Virus record (IMG/VR): IMGVR_UViG_3300028862_000012
Location: 159,866-223,865 of that record
DNA length: 64,000 nucleotides
Strand: one strand, 5' to 3'
Below are positions 9,871 to 60,622 of the stretch, one piece after another (within the stretch, counting starts at the first letter, position 1; every line of letters begins with the position of its first letter). The notes below the pieces were generated by a model. The model ran no database searches, was not told the origin of the DNA, and saw only the letters and a program-made list of their open reading frames with translations. The position numbers and the translations under genes were made by a program.

Positions 9871-10527
9871 ATGCTTAAAAATATAGTAATTGGCGATATT
9901 CATGGTCGCAGTGATTGGAAGAAATATATAAAAGAAGAATTTGATAATTTTTATTTTGTAGGAGATTATTTTGATTCCAGAGATGGATTTTCTATTATAG
10001 ATCAAATTACAAATTTTAGAGAAATCTGTAAAGTAGTCAGAAAAGATTCACGATTTCATCTTTGTCTAGGAAATCATTGCCATCAATATCTTAGAGGACT
10101 AGAACCAGATTATTATTTAAGTTGTAGTGGCGCTCAATTTTCTGCTCGATTTGATATACAAGAAGTACTTGAAGCTAATATGGACTTAATTAAAATAGTA
10201 TATCAAATTGACGATACACTTATCTCTCATGCTGGAATCAGTAATAGCTTTATGAAAGTTTTAAATCTTACTAATCCACTTGATATTAATAATCGATTTA
10301 ATGAATATAGAACTTCTGTTGGTTGGAACGGCTATGATCCAAAAGGTTATGGAAATAATAAGGACAATAGCTGTTTATGGATACGTCCAGAGGCATTATT
10401 GTCTGACAAATTGACTGGCTATAAGCAAATAGTAGGGCATACTCATTTTGATATTATCACTACTATCGATGGTATTACTTTTACAGATAACAATAATAAA
10501 GAGGTCTATAGATTTTTATCTATATAA
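9871..10527 (+). CDS. Calcineurin-like metallophosphoesterase
   Basis: GDIHG, GDYFD, GNH, HAG, GHT motifs. Confidence 0.9.
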   Translation: MLKNIVIGDIHGRSDWKKYIKEEFDNFYFVGDYFDSRDGFSIIDQITNFREICKVVRKDSRFHLCLGNHCHQYLRGLEPDYYLSCSGAQFSARFDIQEVLEANMDLIKIVYQIDDTLISHAGISNSFMKVLNLTNPLDINNRFNEYRTSVGWNGYDPKGYGNNKDNSCLWIRPEALLSDKLTGYKQIVGHTHFDIITTIDGITFTDNNNKEVYRFLSI

Positions 10528-11124: not shown

Positions 11125-11398
11125 AAGAAACAGAAATTATAGAATTTAAAAATGATTCTTTAATTATTAAAGAAAACTTTTTAATAAACTCTAAATACAA
11201 AGATATTAAAGCACTGCGAGAGAAGACCAAAGATGAAGAGGATTATATGCCAGATACTAACGCTTTGTGCTTGCAGTAATGTTAGTATAAAGTGTGATCT
11301 TATACTGAACAGTGGAATTTATGTTAGAACGACAAACAACCGTGTACCGGCCTTGCGGCCACTACACGGATAATTTGCGGGAAGAAAAGGAGGGAAGA

Positions 11399-12226
11399 TT
11401 GACAGCATCAGAATTATTTTCTGGGAATAAACATAATCACGGCGATCACAACTGCTATTACTGTGGTGCATCGTGTGATGAACAATATAAAACCGCTGAT
11501 TACGTAAAAGATACGTTTACCAATCGCGATATTGTGAAATATCCACAGTCGCAATTTGTTTGTGTCGGCTGCGTTGAATCTCTAGGGAATGGCGAAGACA
11601 AAATGCCGTTCATCGACGGGACGGTGAAAGTCAGAGAGAACGCGCGTGGTATGTGCCCGCGAATGTATTCGTGGATTTTATTTACAGATCATAAGCTCGC
11701 CGGAACAAAGGCCCATATAAAAGAATGGCGCGAGCTTTTAGCCAATCCTCCCGAACCGCCATTTGCAGTAATCCTTGCAGATTCCGGGCAGAAGCAGTTG
11801 ATATTCCGTGCACCTATCGCAATGAGTAAAAAGTGTTTTTCAATTCTTCTTGAAGATGAATGTATCGAAGTAATTCCCGAACAGCTTGCAGAACGCCTTG
11901 AAATGTGTACACCGATTTGCGCGGCTCTTGGCAAACCTGCACTGCAGGGAGAAATCTCTTTTTCATCTTATACCCGATATAACGAATATCATGGTGAAAT
12001 TGAAACTCTTGAAAAATGGTTGGCCATTCGTGACCAGCCTTTGTCGCGCCTTGCGGCGTGGTTATCGCTATCAAAGGAGAATGCACAGAATGAGTATGCA
12101 AGTATTGAGTGCGGAAAAGTTCCGGCAGGAACTCGCGGGACTAGTGGACAAAAGCCGGACGATTCCAGAAATGGAACTCGGAGTAATCAAGGATCAGGCG
12201 GTCAGGTTCTGCTCGATCTTGGCTGA
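11399..12226 (+). CDS. csf1: Type IV CRISPR large subunit Csf1 (Cas8-like)
   Basis: Zn-finger CYYCGxxC...CVGC, QKQLIFRAP motif; probable TTG start at 11399 after AGGAGG (track start 11312); first gene of csf operon. Confidence 0.85.
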   Translation: MTASELFSGNKHNHGDHNCYYCGASCDEQYKTADYVKDTFTNRDIVKYPQSQFVCVGCVESLGNGEDKMPFIDGTVKVRENARGMCPRMYSWILFTDHKLAGTKAHIKEWRELLANPPEPPFAVILADSGQKQLIFRAPIAMSKKCFSILLEDECIEVIPEQLAERLEMCTPICAALGKPALQGEISFSSYTRYNEYHGEIETLEKWLAIRDQPLSRLAAWLSLSKENAQNEYASIECGKVPAGTRGTSGQKPDDSRNGTRSNQGSGGQVLLDLG

Positions 12227-12578
12227 GGTGTTCGGCGAAGACCTTGACCGGAAAACTTTATGGGAGCGTATCGGAAACGGCCTTATTGTCGCAGCTGCAA
12301 AATGCGGCGGCGACTGGGAGCTGTTCGTCAATGAGATGCTCAAATACATTAAGGCAGAACCGGGAAAAGTAGCGGCGAATCGCGGGCTTGCGGCTTTCAT
12401 CGACGAGATGCTTGTTCGCCCGAAAGAATGGCAAGAGCAGTTTGTCCGCGAATGCGAGGCAAAGCATATGTTCATTTGCGTCAAAGCGCGGATGCTCTGG
12501 AACTCACGAAAAACACCACAGGACAATCCCGATGCAGAAGATCGTTTGACCGGAGGTGCAGAAAATGGAACTAATTAA
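12090..12578 (+). CDS. cas11: Type IV small subunit (Cas11-like)
   Basis: Helical ~160 aa protein (DRKTLWERIGNGL) between csf1 and csf2; start chosen by RBS AGGAG at 12075. Confidence 0.7.
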   Translation: MSMQVLSAEKFRQELAGLVDKSRTIPEMELGVIKDQAVRFCSILAEVFGEDLDRKTLWERIGNGLIVAAAKCGGDWELFVNEMLKYIKAEPGKVAANRGLAAFIDEMLVRPKEWQEQFVRECEAKHMFICVKARMLWNSRKTPQDNPDAEDRLTGGAENGTN

Positions 12579-13521
12579 AAACTGCAAAATACATTGCCTT
12601 TCAACGGCATTATCTCCGATCACGCACATGATGGGAACCTCTGGGAATGAATCCGTCATCAACCGCGAATCAGTCCTGTTCAAAAATAAAATCAGACAGG
12701 TTCCGGTTCTGTCTGGCAACGCAATTCGTCACAAGATGATACGCGATCCAGGCGGCCTCTACCTTATCAAAGAGTGCGGACTTGTCGGGAAGCTGAACAT
12801 CGATCAAGCGAATTACCTACTGAATGGCGGTTCTCTGACAGAATCTTCGACAACGGAAAACCTTGGGCGTATTGCAGAAATGCAAACACTCATGCCGCTC
12901 ACCCGACTGCTCGGAGGATCACTACGAAATCAGGTTATCGGTGGATCTCTGTTTGTTCTTCGAGGGCTTTTGGTCTGCGAGGAAAACAGAAGCCAGATTC
13001 AGAAACAACTTCCAGAAGGCTACGAACTTCCTGAACAGGCATTGCGTTCGGCGGAAGATTTCATCGATCAATATCAGTACACCCGCGGAGATGCGCAAAA
13101 ACGGAACGACGCTGATCTTATGCTTGAAGAAAAATCCGATGACGTAAAATCAAATCTTATGATTTACAACGGACAGGATGTAATTCCCGGTTCTGTTTTC
13201 TATCATGGGTTCACCTTACAGAATATTTCACCGATCGAAGTAGGGGCATTGCTCCATTCGCTTATTCAGTGGGATGCAGCGGGCGGATTTATCGGAGGTC
13301 AATCACGCATAGGACATGGAAAACTCAAGATGTCGATTTTCTTCGAGGACGGAGACGACTTCATGGGAAATGAACTCAATCCGGCTGATATCGTGAAAAT
13401 GTATATCGACCACGTACACGCGAATGCAGAAAAAATTGCGCAATGGCTCGATGATACATTCCCGAACAAAGGGAAAAAAGCGGACGCGAAAAAACTTGCT
13501 GAAGGAGCGCTCGGCTTATGA
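12556..13521 (+). CDS. csf2: Type IV backbone subunit Csf2 (Cas7 RAMP)
   Basis: ALSPITH, VPVLSGNAIRH, LLGGS and Gly-loop IGGQSRIGHG motifs. Confidence 0.9.
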   Translation: MQKMELIKNCKIHCLSTALSPITHMMGTSGNESVINRESVLFKNKIRQVPVLSGNAIRHKMIRDPGGLYLIKECGLVGKLNIDQANYLLNGGSLTESSTTENLGRIAEMQTLMPLTRLLGGSLRNQVIGGSLFVLRGLLVCEENRSQIQKQLPEGYELPEQALRSAEDFIDQYQYTRGDAQKRNDADLMLEEKSDDVKSNLMIYNGQDVIPGSVFYHGFTLQNISPIEVGALLHSLIQWDAAGGFIGGQSRIGHGKLKMSIFFEDGDDFMGNELNPADIVKMYIDHVHANAEKIAQWLDDTFPNKGKKADAKKLAEGALGL

Positions 13522-14198
13522 TAAAGAACTGGAAAGTCACCGCATGGCTTTCCAGCCCTTTGGCTGGAGAACCCCCACAGTTTGACGCAATACTCGGATG
13601 GGAACTTGCGCGTCGGCTTGGGTATAAACATTGCCGAAAGCTTACAAGAGATACGCCGTTGAGCGATATTCAAAATCCGCCGATCCCACTTGCGCAGCGT
13701 ACTATTTCAGGCGTTGACGTGTTCTGCTGTTCAGCGCCGATACTTCCCGAGCCTCATGATGAATGGGTTGAGAGAATATCAAAGCGGATTGACACCGACG
13801 AAATAGCCTTGCTTCTTGCGCCTGAGTTCCGCAAGTCTCTGCTTGTAGCATCTGGCCCGTATAAGATGCGGTATGTTCCTGAGCGGATTCGCCTTATTGA
13901 TTGCGTATGCTGGTTTGTACGTGGAGATAGAAAAGAAATACACAAGCTAGTAAAATCAGTCTATGCGATTGGGAAGCATCGTAATATTGGGTATGGTCAG
14001 GTTGAAGATTGGACGTTTGAAGAAACTGAAGAAGATTATTCCATCTCTGCATTACGTCAAGGCAAGCCGGTGCTTATGAAAATAATTCCGTTCGGAAGCG
14101 AATGTCAAAATATGACTGGATACAAACATTCTTTCGGCGCGGCGAATATGCCGTATTGGCATCCGGAGAATTATCGGGAGATTGCTTCTCCATGTTGA
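13518..14198 (+). CDS. csf3: Type IV Csf3 (Cas5 RAMP)
   Basis: VTAWLSSPLAG N-terminus, IGKHRNIGYG Gly-loop, C-terminal PYWHP. Confidence 0.85.
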   Translation: MIKNWKVTAWLSSPLAGEPPQFDAILGWELARRLGYKHCRKLTRDTPLSDIQNPPIPLAQRTISGVDVFCCSAPILPEPHDEWVERISKRIDTDEIALLLAPEFRKSLLVASGPYKMRYVPERIRLIDCVCWFVRGDRKEIHKLVKSVYAIGKHRNIGYGQVEDWTFEETEEDYSISALRQGKPVLMKIIPFGSECQNMTGYKHSFGAANMPYWHPENYREIASPC

Positions 14199-14479
14199 TT
14201 GACAAGAAGATAATATTTAGAGCCGGGACGGATACGAAAGAATTATATTTATGTGTTGCGGCTCTAAATAAATATCTTGTAGAAAACGAGATAAGATCAA
14301 ACGATAGAGAACGGACATACAACGTCCACAACAACACGAAAGAAATATACATACGTGAGAGAAGTAAAAGTATTTTTGTGAGGTATAAAAAATTAAAAGA
14401 ACCGAAAGCGCGAGCGCGAAAAGATAAACAGTTAACGAGAGAAACTACAAACAGTACATATGGAGATGGTAGGTGTTAA
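14192..14479 (+). CDS. Small basic hypothetical protein inside the IV-B operon
   Basis: ATG overlaps the csf3 stop; overlaps cysH start (track 14102..14479). Confidence 0.5.
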   Translation: MLIDKKIIFRAGTDTKELYLCVAALNKYLVENEIRSNDRERTYNVHNNTKEIYIRERSKSIFVRYKKLKEPKARARKDKQLTRETTNSTYGDGRC

Positions 14480-15168
14480 TAATAACAGATCGTCATACAG
14501 AAAAAGATTTGAAACTTTGGAAAGAGTATAAGGAGATTGATAAAATATCAACATACTCTGAAAAGAAAATAGAGCTTGCAAAAAAATCTATCAATGAGTT
14601 TTCATGTAAACATATTGATACTGTTATATATACGTCATGGGGAAAGGATTCGATTATTCTTCTTCATCTTGTCGCGCTAATGGAATTAAAATATCCGGTT
14701 GTATATGTACGTTTTAATGACCGCGATAATCCAGATTGTGAATTAGTTCGCGATGCGTTTCTGAAGAAATACAATATTGATTATCACGAGGAATATTTTG
14801 ATTATAAACGCGTTCGTGCAAAAGATTTGCACTGGAAAGAAACGGCTAATAAATATGGGCATCATAGAATTACCGGAATAAGAAACGATGAATCAGGGCG
14901 TCGATTATTGAACTGGAAAAAATACGGCTTCTTTTCAGAAAATACTTGTCGCCCATTATCATTGCTTACAAACAAAGAAGTATTCGCATATATTTATCAT
15001 AATGATTTACCGCTATGCCCTGTATATGGATACCTCGGAGGTGGAAGATGGCCACGTGAAAACATACGAACTCATTCACTCGCAGGTTCAAGTGCGGATG
15101 GTTTCGGACGAACGGAATGGGAGTTCGAATATTATCCTGATATTTTGAACAGAATTAAGAGTTTCTAA
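14473..15168 (+). CDS. cysH: CysH-like (PAPS reductase family) protein, type IV-B accessory gene
   Basis: PP-loop SWGKDS, TGIRNDES..R, RPL...EVFAYI..NDLPLCPVY. Confidence 0.85.
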   Translation: MLIITDRHTEKDLKLWKEYKEIDKISTYSEKKIELAKKSINEFSCKHIDTVIYTSWGKDSIILLHLVALMELKYPVVYVRFNDRDNPDCELVRDAFLKKYNIDYHEEYFDYKRVRAKDLHWKETANKYGHHRITGIRNDESGRRLLNWKKYGFFSENTCRPLSLLTNKEVFAYIYHNDLPLCPVYGYLGGGRWPRENIRTHSLAGSSADGFGRTEWEFEYYPDILNRIKSF

Positions 15169-15221
15169 TAACTGGTTCCACCTGACAATCTTGCGGATTG
15201 CAGGTGAACCAAGTGTTAGGT
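15163..15221 (+). other. attC-like recombination site (59 bp)
   Basis: Inverse core TTCTAAT containing the cysH stop; core GTTAGGT; imperfect palindrome with two extrahelical bases (top C and A = bottom G and T) and an unpaired central spacer. Confidence 0.8.
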
Positions 15222-15227
15222 TGACGC

Positions 15228-15265
15228 TCAATCCATATAGCGCCAGTAGCTGCTATATGGATTGA
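15228..15265 (+). terminator. 14-bp perfect hairpin, probable terminator of the IV-B operon
   Basis: TCAATCCATATAGC / GCTATATGGATTGA. Confidence 0.6.
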
Positions 15266-15318
15266 CCGCAAAAAAGAGCGAAAAAGTGCATTTTTCTGCC
15301 TTTTTTTACATTATTTAG

Positions 15319-15347
15319 TTGACATAATATCTTGATTGTAGTATGCT
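15319..15347 (+). promoter_or_regulatory. sigma70-type promoter of cassette 2
   Basis: TTGACA-17-TATGCT with upstream A/T tracts. Confidence 0.8.
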
Positions 15348-15419
15348 TTAATCAAGGTTGATAGTTAAGGCAACCAAATCTAAACGACCTACGGGCTGGT
15401 CAGTAAACCCGAAAAACAA

Positions 15420-15692
15420 ATGAAGCACGGAAAACTTACCAGAGAACAGGCTATCGAAATCGCAGGATCAGAGATCGTCAAAAAGCTCGATTATGTTAAC
15501 TGCGAACCCACAAGCCGGTTACAGTGCGACGGCGACGACTCAACCGAGTACACCGCATCACTCAAGACCGCCAACGGCGAAACGCTTATTGCCTACTACT
15601 ACACAACACCCGAGCAAGAGCAGACAATTGCAGACGCAGACGCAGATGGTTCGGCGATAGACTGGGAAATCAACGGATACGAGGTTATTTGA
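15420..15692 (+). CDS. Small acidic hypothetical protein (anti-defence candidate)
   Basis: 90 aa, Asp/Glu-rich, first gene after a strong promoter. Confidence 0.7.
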   Translation: MKHGKLTREQAIEIAGSEIVKKLDYVNCEPTSRLQCDGDDSTEYTASLKTANGETLIAYYYTTPEQEQTIADADADGSAIDWEINGYEVI

Positions 15693-15874
15693 TGCAACAC
15701 GGCGGCAAGCGAAATGGGGCGGGCCGCCGCCCTATTTTTGAAAAAACAAAGCTGACCCAAATACGGGTAAATCAGGAAATCTGGGACGCTATCCCGGCAC
15801 CAAAAGCGGCATGGGTTAGGGAAGCGATTGAAGAAAAAGCGAAAAAAAAGAACCTAACAACTGCCTTAACCTGA
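15692..15874 (+). CDS. Small DNA-binding protein (GGxRxGAGR motif plus ribbon-helix-helix-like)
   Basis: HGGKRNGAGRRP, TQIRVNQEIWD, WVREAIEEK; ATG overlaps the previous TGA. Confidence 0.65.
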   Translation: MQHGGKRNGAGRRPIFEKTKLTQIRVNQEIWDAIPAPKAAWVREAIEEKAKKKNLTTALT

Positions 15875-15878
15875 TGTT
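15851..15878 (+). other. Truncated attC relic
   Basis: ACCTAACAACTGCCTTAACCTGA resembles the left arm of the 15163 site (CCTGA); right arm missing, followed by GTT. Confidence 0.5.
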
Positions 15879-15902
15879 AATTTAGAAGACGATTTAAAAG
15901 AT

Positions 15903-18567
15903 TTGAAAGGAGTAAATTCAATGGCAGTAATACAAATGGCGCATGATCTTCCGTCTGATGTTATTGGAAAAACATGGAAGAAAAAAAATCTTGAAATTAC
16001 ACATAAAATTTCTTTGTGGTCATTAGTTGAAATTAATTATGAAGATGCTCCTAATAAAGGTGTTCGCTTGTTGGTATGTAAGCATACTCGTGACTGTGAT
16101 GGTACTCCACTTTATTCCTTGACTTGGGATCGTAATTATTATGAGCAGTTTGTCAATAATCAATATATGACTGTTTCAACCAATGGATATAGCGAAGAAG
16201 ATCTTAAAGTAATACTATGTTTCAATCAACATTGCTAATAAATATTGCTGATGATAAACATGAATTTTCAATATGTGGTAATAGAAGATGTGATGCTGGA
16301 ATATCTAGTGTTGCTTATTCTGCTTATCATGCTGGAATATTAGGATGGAGAAATGTGGAATTGCCAAAAGATGAAGCAAAAGCATATGGGAAAAAGTTTT
16401 TATTACTTTGTCCAGAGTGTTATAGAGTATTAGATAAGATACTTATTTATAAGGTATAAAAGGAGTTTTTTATGAAAATGACTGCTATAATTTGTCTTGA
16501 ACCTGATGAAATTCAGAAAGCGGTAATAGCTTATATTGAAAAAGAAACAAATAAAAAAGTTGATATAAAATCTTTTAGCTTTACTACAGGTACTCGGTCT
16601 GTTGGATCTGGCTTGTCAGAACATGATGAATGGTGTTTTAAAGGATGTACTGTTAAAGTTATAGATGCTTAATATTTATTGGAGTAAAAATGTTTGAGTC
16701 AAGTTGTTCAAATTGCGATGATATAGAATGTCTAGTTAGAGATTATTCCTATGACTGTTATAAGGAAGAAATTAAAGATATACAACAGTGCATGGATAGT
16801 TACGATATTGAACTTATTAAAAAGATTATTGATAGGTCGGATATTCTATATAAACAAACACAGAATGATAAGTTTTATCAGTTTTCTTATTTTGGAAAAC
16901 AGATACTTGATTGCTTTAATGGTGAGTAAGGAAATAAGTATGGAATATATTTTTAATGAACAGGAATATAAAGAATCTTTAGAAAACAAAAAAAATTGCT
17001 GAAGTATCTAAAGTTAATCAACAAGTAATTGAAAAATACTTTAGTGAGAATTGCAATCGAAAGAAGCATGGTTATTGCGATAACTGTATTATTTTAGGAA
17101 CTACTGTTTTATCAGGTGAATGGAATAAGTGTTTAGCAAATTTGTTTATAGAATGTTCAAAGTAAAAGGAATGAATATAAAGAATACAGAATTAGAAGAG
17201 TTGATTAGCCAGTTTATAGAAACACAATCTGATAATGATACAGGTGAGTGTTGTATTTCTTCTAAAGAAATGTCAGAGCAAGTTATGGAAGGATTTAAAG
17301 ATTTTCTAAAATTAAAGGGTAAACGGATTAAATAATATGGAAAAGGTAACACCTAATGCAATACAAGCAAATGGTTTTTATAATCATTTTTCTGGTATGA
17401 AAAAATGGACCATAACTTGTGATAGATGTAACCATACTTGGGTAGAAAAAGTTCCAATAGTAGAACCTTCTTCAGTAGTTTGTCCCTGCTGTTGTACTCA
17501 AAATATATGGTCAATTGTTAAGTTTGAAAAAGAATACAATAAAGTAAATAATTAAGGAGATACTATGTACGATCCGATCTATGTAATTAATTTACAGATT
17601 CATGCTTGCTTTGCAAGCTTTTCCTCTCGTGATATTTATATGTACAAAGAAATATCAAAATCAGAGTTTGATAAAGAAAAACTTTCTGTAACTGGTGACT
17701 ATATTTTTGAAGATACAGAATATGGCTTGTTTGAAATATTTATTGAGGATACTACTTATTATAATGTAAGCATACCTACAAACTATGCTACTCTAGCTGA
17801 GATGCAAATGCTGATTGATAAGTATACTCTTGAACTTGGCTATTCTAGAAATAAGTCAGAAGCGTATAATGATCGTTATGAACTTAGAAAGCTAAATGAA
17901 GAAAAAATAAAAGCAGATGAAAGAAAACAAGCAGGGTATATTTATTATATCAGTGTAGACTGGAAGTATGATCAGAAATTAGCGCAAGGTGGTTTTTCTG
18001 ATGACTTATGGAATTATGAAAAAACACAGCAATATACTAAAAGTAAATCTTTTGGATATTTTGGTCATAATGTGCGAAAAGAAGAATTGGATATTTATAT
18101 AGAGAAAGCTTTGAAAGATATTCATAGTAAATCTAAATTTCCATCAATTGATTATAGAGAAATTTGCTATAGTTATTTAAGTTCCTCTGATGCACGTCAT
18201 ATGTGTGATACTCTTGAAGATATTCCTTTTGAAGCACAAAAAAAAGACATTGATAATAAAATAAAATCTATGTGGAATAATGCTTATATCTATGGAAAGA
18301 AAGAGCATGATGGAACATTTTATGGAACCATGAATTTAATGGATAAGTATAAAGAGGATTTGTTTGACTATGAATAAAGATATAACAAAACTTTTAAAGT
18401 GCTATGCTACTTATTGTGATACTAATATTGATTGTTTACTTACTGAAAGGCAAATGGTTTTATCAAAAGAATATACGATTAAAATCGATGAATTATTTGA
18501 TAGATATTTATCTTCAATGGCAGAGTTTAAAAACTGCATTGAACTTATATTAAAACATAAAGACTAG
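15903..18567 (+). other. Cluster of ~10 small hypothetical ORFs (incl. 17565..18377, 270 aa)
   Basis: Tightly packed co-oriented ORFs, no recognisable motifs. Confidence 0.7.
16940..17165 (+). pseudogene. Hypothetical ORF split at an A8 run (16988-16995)
   Basis: Removing one A gives a 74-aa ORF ENKKIAEVSKVNQQ...IECSK. Confidence 0.6.
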
Positions 18568-59179: not shown

Positions 59180-60622
59180 TTAGGGATTAGTATATGTAAA
59201 GGTGAAGCCTTTTAGTTGATTTCGTTCTCCTCTGACACATCTATTTATATATCTTGCATCAATATCAATATTAAAGGTATTCTTTATATATTCAACACAC
59301 TTATATTTATCTTCTAATGAAATTATAAACTCTTTTGATGGATACTTATATATTGATATTCCTTTTAATCCAAACTTTCCTATAATAGTTCCGTTTCTTT
59401 TTTGAACTAAAATAGGATCATAATTACACCATCCTAATTCTGTTCCTGTTTTTAAATAACCTACTATAATTGATCTTGATATATGAAATACTTCAGCTAA
59501 ATCAGTAGTAAATAAATTTTCATGACTTGAATAATATTCACATATAGACTTAGCTAAATTAGTCATAGTATCTGTCTTTAACTTATTCCAATCAAAGTTT
59601 TCTAATTTTAGAAGGTTATATAAATTACTATTTATTACATTATTTTTTATTAAATTAAATTCGGAACGCTCGCAATCGATGCGAATAAGTATATGATCAT
59701 CTTCTTTAGCTAGTCGATCTTTTTCATAGTCAAAGAAAATAGTATCTTCTAATTTTTGACCTCCTTTGTATTCTCTCTTATGGAAGCCTCCATCCATCTC
59801 TATAATATATTTTTTATCATTTAGTTTGAAATAAAAATCATATTGAAATTGTTTTATTTCATTATCAAATATTATTGAGGCCCATTTAGGTGAATATTCT
59901 TTTATAAACTTTTTATTTAATTGTTCAAGCATAAAGTACATAAACTTATTTGGATAACTCATGCCATCTCCACATGGGCATCTGAATCCTAAAGAAGTAT
60001 ATAAATTAGAAATACTTAATTTATTATTTTTTATTCTTCCACAATCAGGACACTTAAAATATATTTTTTTACTGCTTTGTTTAGAATACAACTTAGCATC
60101 CTCTGGATCTTGAAAATATTTTACCATCCAAGGGTCGGTTTTATAAATTGAATTTATTTCTGGAATTATAGTATTGCTCGAACAACAACTACAACCGTTT
60201 TTATCATTTAACAAATGTCCTTCAGTAATTTTTCCTTCTGTCCAACCACAATTTAAACAAGTATATTTATACCATTTATCTTCCCAATCATTTTTAGTCT
60301 TTTTATAATATCTATCTGTAATTTTTAATGATCTATGTTCATCAGTAAATATAGAATCTATTTCTACCTTAAACTCTTTAGTATTTTTTAGAAGTATCCT
60401 TCCTAAATTACATTCGCTTAAAGCATGTATATCTATTATATACTCTTTTACATTATATAATATTGTTATTTTTCTATAATCTAAATATTTTATTAATTTA
60501 ATAATTCCAGAAATTTCACCATAGCTAAAGCTTACTTCTTTTCCTATGGATTTTTTCCAGTCTATAAGCTTTCCATATTTTAAAACTAAACTTGATAAGT
60601 CAATACTTTTTTGAGTTTTCAT
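59180..60622 (-). CDS. Free-standing homing-endonuclease-like protein (Zn ribbons, DUF559/Vsr-like nuclease, NUMOD1-like tail)
   Basis: CLNCG, CPDCG; YDFYF...IIEMDGGFH; C-terminal YINRCVRGERNQLKGFTF. Confidence 0.7.
   Translation of the reverse strand: MKTQKSIDLSSLVLKYGKLIDWKKSIGKEVSFSYGEISGIIKLIKYLDYRKITILYNVKEYIIDIHALSECNLGRILLKNTKEFKVEIDSIFTDEHRSLKITDRYYKKTKNDWEDKWYKYTCLNCGWTEGKITEGHLLNDKNGCSCCSSNTIIPEINSIYKTDPWMVKYFQDPEDAKLYSKQSSKKIYFKCPDCGRIKNNKLSISNLYTSLGFRCPCGDGMSYPNKFMYFMLEQLNKKFIKEYSPKWASIIFDNEIKQFQYDFYFKLNDKKYIIEMDGGFHKREYKGGQKLEDTIFFDYEKDRLAKEDDHILIRIDCERSEFNLIKNNVINSNLYNLLKLENFDWNKLKTDTMTNLAKSICEYYSSHENLFTTDLAEVFHISRSIIVGYLKTGTELGWCNYDPILVQKRNGTIIGKFGLKGISIYKYPSKEFIISLEDKYKCVEYIKNTFNIDIDARYINRCVRGERNQLKGFTFTYTNP

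Follow-up and report, generated by a model that had tools for sequence, protein, structure and literature searches.

We found that a six-gene CRISPR-derived (type IV-B) operon in a giant phage ends in a site that an attC covariance model recognises as an integron recombination site, and that the operon recurs almost base for base in an unrelated element, with its neighbour cassette in the opposite order; it therefore most likely moves as an unusually large integron gene cassette, although the integrase-catalysed step is inferred.

A GC-rich island encodes a type IV-B operon

We analysed a window of 64,000 nucleotides (positions 159,866 to 223,865 of IMG/VR record IMGVR_UViG_3300028862_000012). 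Window positions 11323-15876 form the only 44-50% GC stretch in a ~29% GC, 224-kb phage contig; the island has 44% GC against 29% for the rest of the window, and GC3 is 0.39-0.57 for the csf genes and those of the second segment (cassette B, below) against 0.12-0.28 for the phage neighbours. The first segment of the island (cassette A) contains the following:

11323-11329, plus strand: GTTAGAA, the 5' core of cassette A, where the GC-rich DNA starts; the inferred crossover is G|TT, between 11323 and 11324.
11399-12226, plus strand: csf1 (Cas8-like large subunit), TTG start; PADLOC typeIV_Cas8 2.2e-74, TIGR03114 7e-14.
12081-12578, plus strand: cas11 (small subunit); PADLOC typeIV_Cas11 5.2e-41.
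12565-13521, plus strand: csf2 (Cas7 backbone); PADLOC typeIV_Cas7 1.1e-95, TIGR03115.
13518-14198, plus strand: csf3 (Cas5); PADLOC typeIV_Cas5 2.8e-38, TIGR03116.
14192-14479, plus strand: 95-aa ORF of unknown function, in a variable slot between csf3 and cysH.
14473-15168, plus strand: cysH-like PAPS-reductase-family gene (PAPS_reduct), the IV-B hallmark accessory gene; PF01507 4.8e-10, phrog_2302 1.7e-19.
15163-15221, plus strand: attC of cassette A, with its crossover G|TT between 15215 and 15216.

The PADLOC hits, together with NCBIfam Csf1/2/3 hits below their cut-offs, identify csf1, cas11, csf2 and csf3, and the adjacent cysH-like gene completes a type IV-B locus; no array-like repeat was found in the window, and no other cas hit among the island ORFs. 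The phage copy of csf1 has lost its stop codon (12092 is G, where metagenome contig L015 has T giving TAG) and reads 44 codons into cas11. The 95-aa ORF had no family hit but is also called as a gene in loci L012, L015 and L010, while phage L002 has an unrelated 88-aa ORF at this position. There is no promoter-like site upstream of csf1.

An attC-like site covers the cysH stop codon

The cysH stop TAA (15166-15168) lies inside TTCTAAT (15163-15169), the 5' end of a 59-bp site whose layout is R'' TTCTAAT, spacer AACT, L'' GGTT-C-CACCTG, an extrahelical A, stem-loop CAATC/GATTG, L' CAGGTG-AACC, spacer AAGT and R' GTTAGGT. The site folds with z = -4.2 on either strand, and its bottom strand carries one extrahelical G and one extrahelical T on the same ('') arm, 6 bp apart; this layout matches that of attC-aadA1 (7-bp R box, 4-5 nt unpaired spacer, 3-4 bp, extrahelical G, 6 bp, extrahelical T, stem-loop).

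To ask whether this resemblance exceeds chance, we built a covariance model (R1) only from 12 clinical class 1 integron attC sites; the site was its best hit in the whole window on both strands, that is, in 128 kb of searched strand (22.7 bits, E 3e-4; next best 14 bits). Held-out true attCs scored from 11 to 58 bits, with two not detected at all, and the best non-attC background in about 180 kb was 14 bits. A second model, R2, gave 52.1 bits; these models are home-made, R2 is partly circular, and the assignment rests on them rather than on IntegronFinder or HattCI. The first-pass annotation had described an unpaired central spacer, but the minimum-energy fold instead pairs AAC 15170-15172 with GTT, and the 4x4 unpaired spacer AACT/AAGT appears only in the model's register. 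Similarly, the inverse core of this attC ends in AAT and not the conserved AAC, with T at the R position, and is complementary to GTTAGAA at 6 of 7 positions, the seventh being a T.G wobble.

Beyond this site lies a second, smaller segment, and two features of the flanking phage DNA are also relevant:

15216-15882, plus strand: cassette B, with a 14-bp perfect hairpin (about 15228-15267), its own promoter-like site (15319-15347, TTGACA-17-TATGCT), a 90-aa ORF (15420-15692) and an overlapping 60-aa ORF (15692-15874).
15852-15882, plus strand: collapsed attC of cassette B; a possible residual crossover is G|TT, between 15876 and 15877.
15921-16238, plus strand: 105-aa ORF just right of the island, probably an older, composition-adapted cassette gene that has lost its attC.
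11255-11287, minus strand: R-box-only palindrome TACTAAC...GTTAGTA in the end of the phage ORF 11121-11279, 36 nt left of the island.

GTTAGGTT lies at 15215-15222 and its exact complement AACCTAAC at 15851-15858 (8 of 8 positions); the inverse core of cassette B (R'' ACCTAAC) is the exact complement of its own 5' GTTAGGT. The inverse core is followed only by the 5' half of an attC (AACT GCCT T AACCTG A) and then by TGTTAATT; L' is missing, and R2 gives 10.7 bits, which is not significant on its own, although the 5' half aligns with the first attC of L015 and with a likewise truncated site in contig L044. A homologue of the 90-aa protein in the 45-kb phage L113 also has its own promoter. The left-hand palindrome was the second-best hit of R1 (14 bits, E 0.14; 10.3 bits with R2); inverted GTTRRRY motifs have been reported at the borders of phage CALINs (Qi et al. 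2023, PMC9892861), but it may be a pseudo-site or a chance match.

Near-identical copies break at GTT cores

In other metagenome contigs (L015, L016, L037 and L010) the same two segments occur at 99.5-99.95% identity but in swapped order. Window 11321-15219 equals L015 2672-6570 (99.95% identity, 2 mismatches in 3.9 kb), and window 15214-15847 equals L015 1706-2338 (99.5%). The three homology breakpoints coincide with three of the only four GTTAG in the 7213 bp of L015. On the left, homology to L015, L016 and L037 starts at 11321 (ATGTTAGAA), which is the R' core of an attC (26.3 bits) that lies directly upstream of cassette A in those contigs and, in L015, ends in GTTAGAA exactly where the IV-B segment starts. 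On the right, L010 is 100% identical to the window up to 15219 and unrelated after GTTAG. The attC of cassette A, there followed by GTTAGAA, scores 27.3 bits in L015 and L010. L015 has no recognisable attC upstream of B; nevertheless, with two attCs 3.8 kb apart it qualifies as a CALIN, whereas the window, with one intact attC and one collapsed, strictly holds an isolated cassette plus a remnant.

The 105-aa ORF to the right of the island has homologues (81-86% aa, 74-83% nt) in contigs L043 and L044 that are single-gene units bounded by attCs (34.7, 19.3, 17.0 and 13.6 bits); homology covers only 15905-16216, and GC3 is 0.23 in the phage against 0.33 and 0.43 there. Indeed, the same attC type is widespread, occurring in 27 GTDB genome contigs of many phyla and in 40 IMG/VR contigs, with arrays of up to 7 same-strand sites, for example six in a Treponemataceae chromosome. 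Covariation is strong: the L box is 99.3% paired, 7 of 9 pairs show compensatory changes, and 0 of 500 shuffles reach the observed score.

Each computational refutation test named in the first-pass annotation that could be run came out in favour of its reading. Its description of the array as integrase-less holds for the window: a tblastn search with IntI1 gave no hit in the window or in any other locus searched, although the other 160 kb of the phage contig (positions 1-159865) lay outside the search. Its suggestion that host integrons exchange such modules with phages remains a conjecture; the other carriers look phage-like and we found no bacterial genome with this operon. More distant IV-B loci, including the 79%-identical operon in phage L002, carry no attC and are bounded differently, meaning that this is one lineage and not a general property of IV-B.

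An inferred route of insertion

We consider it likely, although not certain, that the island consists of two integron-type gene cassettes inserted into a ~29% GC jumbo phage: a promoterless cassette A of about 3.9 kb (11324-15215) ending in an intact attC, and cassette B of about 0.66 kb, whose attC has lost its 3' half. In the inferred mechanism, the cassettes were excised from an array, in a cell expressing an integron integrase, as a circle of the order A-attC_A-B-attC_B, and the folded bottom strand of attC_B recombined with a GWT-type genomic site in replicating phage DNA, giving the junctions ...ATG|TTAGAA... on the left and ...GATG|TTAATT... on the right. The terminal attC hairpin would then have been collapsed by replication slippage. 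IntI is known to insert cassettes at genomic GWT sites, and folded attCs are easily lost by slippage (10.1101/2022.09.11.507474); phage attCs recombine with attI1 in assays (PMC9892861). We found no empty site for the phage or for the L015-type element, so the phage-side junctions cannot be fixed to the base; the right-hand attC lacks L', and the right junction could be illegitimate. A six-gene, 3.9-kb cassette is also far from the usual single promoterless ORF of about 0.5-1 kb, while cassette B has two genes and its own promoter, as toxin-antitoxin cassettes do.

Expression of A would depend on read-through from the co-oriented phage genes upstream. From what is known of the family, we infer that the Csf complex binds small RNAs without cleaving targets and acts together with the CysH-like ATP-pyrophosphatase-fold enzyme; in the phage it most likely serves conflict with the host or with competing mobile elements, and not adaptive immunity, because no CRISPR array or adaptation genes are present.

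Alternative explanations

The most serious alternative, which we nonetheless consider unlikely, is integrase-independent exchange between co-infecting phages, in which the attC-like hairpins are conserved intergenic stem-loops (weak terminators or linkers) used by phage recombinases or microhomology-mediated joining to shuffle modules, in the way promoter-stem-loop cassettes are thought to work in T4-type phages. This would accord with the absence of intI from the sequences searched, with the phage-like character of all carriers that could be typed (L002 has terS and terL; L113 has terminase and ERF), with a right junction that lies inside an attC and not at R', and with the insertion of the related L002 operon with a 17-bp direct repeat and no attC; the junction between A and B shares only TGTTAG, which is also a microhomology. 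However, three of three breakpoints lie on the G|TT core and not elsewhere in the 58-nt sites, six nucleotides is too short for homologous exchange, and swapping the order of two adjacent units needs a circular intermediate or two separate events. The sites also covary and keep every structural feature that matters only to IntI (extrahelical bases, spacer, and an R box with AAC/GTT), and the same attC type forms ordinary arrays in bacterial chromosomes.

Two further possibilities seem very unlikely. The assembler might have joined phage reads with reads of the L015-type element, since both arrangements occur in metagenomes of the same series and A is a 3.9-kb repeat shared between them; yet the island is flanked by phage DNA on both sides, which needs two switches, the A-B junction and the attC_B remnant exist in no L015-type contig, and the same structure is found in a JGI contig of 223,865 bp and an ENA contig of 155,593 bp (99.994% identical over 16.7 kb), as well as in two further 20-50 kb contigs. 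Alternatively, the hairpin might be only a terminator or regulatory element that resembles attC by coincidence, as it sits immediately after the last gene and, in L010 and L015, between convergent operons, and attCs are themselves weak terminators (PMC9892861). Here, no T-run follows it and our scan does not call it a terminator; it matches two attC models over its full length, it is absent from the homologous operons in L002, L003 and L040, and homology between genomes breaks exactly at its GTT.

Relation to known systems

The first-pass annotation's belief that phage-borne cassettes are undescribed is wrong: integrase-less CALINs and isolated attC cassettes are known from phage genomes, virulent ones included, with GTTRRRY-type inverted motifs near the borders and cargo linked to phage-host conflict, methyltransferases in that study (Qi et al. 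2023, PMC9892861). Here the cargo is a six-gene Cas-derived operon, the phage is an uncultured 224-kb jumbo phage with only one intact attC, and near-identical cassettes in another order in a second element document a recent transfer directly, which that survey could not show. Conflict systems packaged as attC cassettes, sometimes with several genes and sometimes with their own promoter, are also known from sedentary chromosomal integrons (10.1101/2024.07.02.601686), but those sit in bacterial chromosomes next to intI and not in a phage. Insertion of a cassette with its attC at a site needing only GWT, with expression from neighbouring promoters and an attC prone to loss by slippage (SALINs; Loot et al., 10.1101/2022.09.11.507474), was shown experimentally in the E. 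coli chromosome, whereas here it is inferred for phage DNA and a two-cassette unit, without the empty site. Described type IV-B modules with cysH (Pinilla-Redondo et al., 10.1101/780106; Zhou et al., PMC7937560) likewise have csf1-cas11-csf2-csf3 plus a cysH-like gene, no array, Cas6, DinG or adaptation genes, and a mobile carrier; the described carriers are mainly plasmids and sometimes prophages, no attC or integron link is mentioned in that paper (0 occurrences), and the operon here has an extra variable 95-aa ORF between csf3 and cysH. In the papers we searched, a CRISPR-Cas-type operon as a cassette is not described.

It is somewhat more probable than not that phages in this habitat draw on the integron cassette pool for multi-gene conflict modules, and that a complete CRISPR-Cas-derived effector complex (type IV-B with cysH) circulates as a single attC cassette, moved very recently between unrelated elements, one of them a jumbo phage, by integron-integrase chemistry acting on phage DNA. 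That would be the first CRISPR-Cas-type system in a cassette and a concrete mobility mechanism for IV-B.

Genomic context and gene content of the island

The parent contig, IMGVR_UViG_3300028862_000012 (also known as Ga0302296_1000003), is 223,865 bp long, and the window, which is its last 64 kb, is about 29% GC and reads as part of an uncultured jumbo phage. It encodes tail-fibre-like proteins, a weak large-terminase match, a thymidylate synthase and a tRNA nucleotidyltransferase, together with a 480-aa ORF (59183-60622) that matches a homing-endonuclease PHROG (phrog_9084) in its central part and may be a mobile endonuclease gene in the phage; it has no tRNA genes and no CRISPR-like array. 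Megablast against GenBank phages and blastn against PLSDB plasmids gave no match to the region, and Rfam returned nothing relevant.

The stretch 11323-15876 is the only GC-rich segment of the window, with 44% GC overall against 29% for the rest. Searches with PADLOC, NCBIfam and Pfam identified the following genes:

11399-12226, csf1
12081-12578, cas11
12565-13521, csf2
13518-14198, csf3
14192-14479, an unassigned 95-aa ORF
14473-15168, a cysH-like PAPS-reductase-family gene

This is the type IV-B gene set, without an array, Cas6, DinG or an adaptation module. The 95-aa ORF and cysH (14192-15168) are much AT-richer (35% GC, GC3 0.28-0.33) than the csf genes (45-51% GC); the same drop is seen in the related operon of L002, another phage, and so belongs to the operon and is not a sign of a mosaic.

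The cysH stop codon lies inside TTCTAAT (15163-15169), the start of a 59-bp imperfect palindrome that ends in GTTAGGT (15215-15221). This palindrome folds far better than shuffled sequence (z -4.2), and on the bottom strand has an extrahelical G and an extrahelical T on one arm. GTTAGAA at 11323, GTTAGGTT at 15215 and AACCTAAC at 15851 are all where the first-pass annotation placed them.

The palindrome scores like a divergent but real attC

We wondered whether this site is an attC. To test this, we aligned 12 attC sites from class 1 integrons on sequenced plasmids (aadA1, aadA2, aadB, catB2, catB3, cmlA5, VIM-2, VIM-4, aac(6')-Ib, aac(6')-IIa and two others), annotated the R box and the L box with its bulged base, and built a covariance model from them. 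With all filters off, the best hit in the whole window on both strands is 15163-15221 on the + strand, full length, at 22.7 bits and E 3e-4; the next hit scores 14 bits. Ten true attCs kept out of the model gave 58, 50, 47.5, 45, 40, 34, 33, 28.5, 12.5 and 11 bits, while IMP-45 and qnrVC6 were missed altogether, and the best non-attC background in about 180 kb was 14 bits; the site therefore scores like a divergent but real attC. Alignment of real attCs showed that the inverse core is TTCTAAT and that the elements follow the same sequence as in attC-aadA1, the only departure being AAT in place of the conserved AAC in the inverse core.

An R-box-only palindrome, TACTAAC-N19-GTTAGTA (11255-11287; 14 bits, E 0.14), lies in the end of a phage ORF 36 nt from the island edge and is followed by a second hairpin at 11281-11311; its meaning is unclear.

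Near-identical segments occur in swapped order with breakpoints at GTT cores

The strongest evidence is comparative. Looking up the exact Csf2 and CysH proteins led us to contigs from other samples of the same series, L015 (7.2 kb), L016, L037 and L010, which are 45-50% GC and unrelated to the phage. Window 11321-15219, containing the IV-B segment (cassette A), equals L015 2672-6570 with 2 mismatches in 3899 bp, and window 15214-15847, from the two-gene segment that follows it (cassette B), equals L015 1706-2338 at 99.5% identity. The order, however, is reversed: L015 reads B, then 333 bp, then A, then a convergent seven-gene operon, while the window reads phage, A, B, phage. One of the two differences in A falls in csf1, where the phage copy has GAG in place of the L015 stop TAG, so that Csf1 is extended by 44 codons that overlap cas11 (12092-12226).

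The 333 bp in L015 contain an 89-aa ORF and a second, different attC (L015 2623-2680, 26.3 bits), whose R' core GTTAGAA is exactly where cassette A begins. In L015 and L010 the attC after cysH is followed by GTTAGAA, which pairs with its inverse core TTCTAAT through six Watson-Crick pairs and one wobble, and the site then scores 27.3 bits; L010 is 100% identical to the window up to GTTAG and unrelated from the next base on. L015 has only four GTTAG in 7213 bp, and three of them are the three breakpoints; if breakpoints fell at random, each would land within 2 nt of such a site with a probability of about 0.003. Swapped order at near-identity, with every boundary on a G|TT core, is what integron cassette shuffling produces, and a single illegitimate capture of contiguous DNA would not produce it.

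Related attC sites bound other cassettes

The 105-aa ORF just right of the island (15921-16238) looked like phage DNA, at 33% GC. It nevertheless has homologues at 74-83% nucleotide identity in two further contigs, L043 (47% GC) and L044 (53% GC), where it is a single-gene unit (L043 4244-4702 and L044 2669-3004) bounded by attCs of the same kind (34.7, 19.3, 17.0 and 13.6 bits), one of which is nearly identical to the attC upstream of cassette A in L015. In the phage this gene has phage-like codon composition and no attC, which suggests an older cassette at the same spot, and hence a recurrent insertion site.

A pattern taken from these sites matched 27 GTDB genome contigs from many phyla, one of them a Treponemataceae chromosome with six same-strand model hits. 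It also matched 40 IMG/VR contigs, mostly 30-55 kb, with arrays of up to seven sites; among IMG/VR contigs of 24-56 kb, L089 (5819-7711), L083 and L082 carry dense same-strand arrays of up to seven attC hits about 300 bp apart. Across 32 such sites the L box is 99.3% paired and seven of its nine pairs show compensatory changes, although the alignment was fitted to the model, which favours the structure. A second model built from these 32 sites gives the window site 52 bits, which is partly circular because the two L015 sites were in the training set, and finds nothing else significant in the window.

The attC of cassette B is collapsed or truncated

At the right end of the island, AACCTAAC is the exact complement of the 5' GTTAGGTT of cassette B. 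It is followed by AACT GCCT T AACCTG A, which aligns base for base with the 5' halves of the attC of cassette A and of the L015 site upstream of it, up to the second bulged base; TGTTAATT and AT-rich DNA follow, and there is no L'. The attC of B is thus collapsed or truncated, in agreement with the first-pass annotation, which had called it truncated. A site of the same form as window 15852-15882 lies in L044 (3253-3276), where it is truncated after the 5' half (GCATAAC AACT GCTT C AACCTG A...) directly upstream of the ribosome-binding site of the next gene. Loot et al. note that folded attCs are readily deleted by replication slippage (10.1101/2022.09.11.507474).

Cassette B opens with a 14-bp perfect inverted repeat (TCAATCCATATAGC/GCTATATGGATTGA; 15228-15267) upstream of its promoter, with a 1-nt shorter left arm in L015. 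Pfam, PHROGs and PDB sequence searches gave no function for the two B proteins or for the 95-aa ORF.

No integrase gene or empty site was found

Searches by tblastn found no IntI homologue in the window or in any locus examined. No empty site of the phage was found: a gapped pattern scan of IMG/VR gave 0 hits, all contigs carrying the identical right-flank gene carry the island, and the flank proteins 9871-10524 and 17565-18374 find only the phage itself. Neither an empty site nor longer contigs were found for the L015-type element, and no csf2 relatives were found in GTDB genomes.

The elements that carry these cassettes look like phages wherever they can be typed. L002 carries a 79%-identical IV-B operon between terS and terL, bracketed by an exact 17-bp direct repeat (CCGCAATTAAGCGATAA; L002 1115-1131 and 4964-4980) and with no attC, which suggests a different insertion route for the same module. 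A homologue of the 90-aa protein of B sits in a 45-kb phage with its own promoter and no attC, and no attC was found next to the more distant IV-B operons examined (L002, L003 and L038-L042). The attC link therefore belongs to one lineage, and a host integron as the donor is not shown.

Inferred route of insertion and function

In the best-supported reading, A and B were excised from an array as one circle, which was inserted through the attC of B into a GWT-type site in phage DNA by an integron integrase of the infected cell, after which the terminal hairpin collapsed. Insertion in this way gives exactly the observed order, A then B, and G|TT at both junctions (ATG|TTAGAA and GATG|TTAATT). 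A has no promoter-like site of its own, and so would be read from the co-oriented phage genes upstream, while B has TTGACA-17-TATGCT. The function of the IV-B complex in the phage is inferred only from the family: it is an RNA-loaded, nuclease-free Csf filament working with a CysH-like enzyme, and most likely acts in conflict with the host or with rival mobile elements.

Discussion

Integrase-less attC clusters in virulent phages have been published together with positive recombination assays (PMC9892861), as has cassette insertion at GWT sites (10.1101/2022.09.11.507474). Defence systems are also known as cassettes, but with the explicit statement that CRISPR-Cas is absent from integrons (10.1101/2024.07.02.601686), an absence that integron surveys attribute to a size limit. 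The type IV survey we consulted does not mention integrons, and full-text searches found no paper linking the two. What differs here is the unusually large, Cas-derived cargo, which comes with a natural donor-recipient pair.

How type IV-B modules spread, and what they do, is an open question, and nothing about their mobility has been pinned to a mechanism. This locus gives a Cas-derived six-gene operon with an intact attC, a second attC upstream in another element, and a natural 'before and after' pair at 99.95% identity. It extends the known cargo size and type of cassettes, and gives direct comparative evidence for cassette traffic into a jumbo phage.
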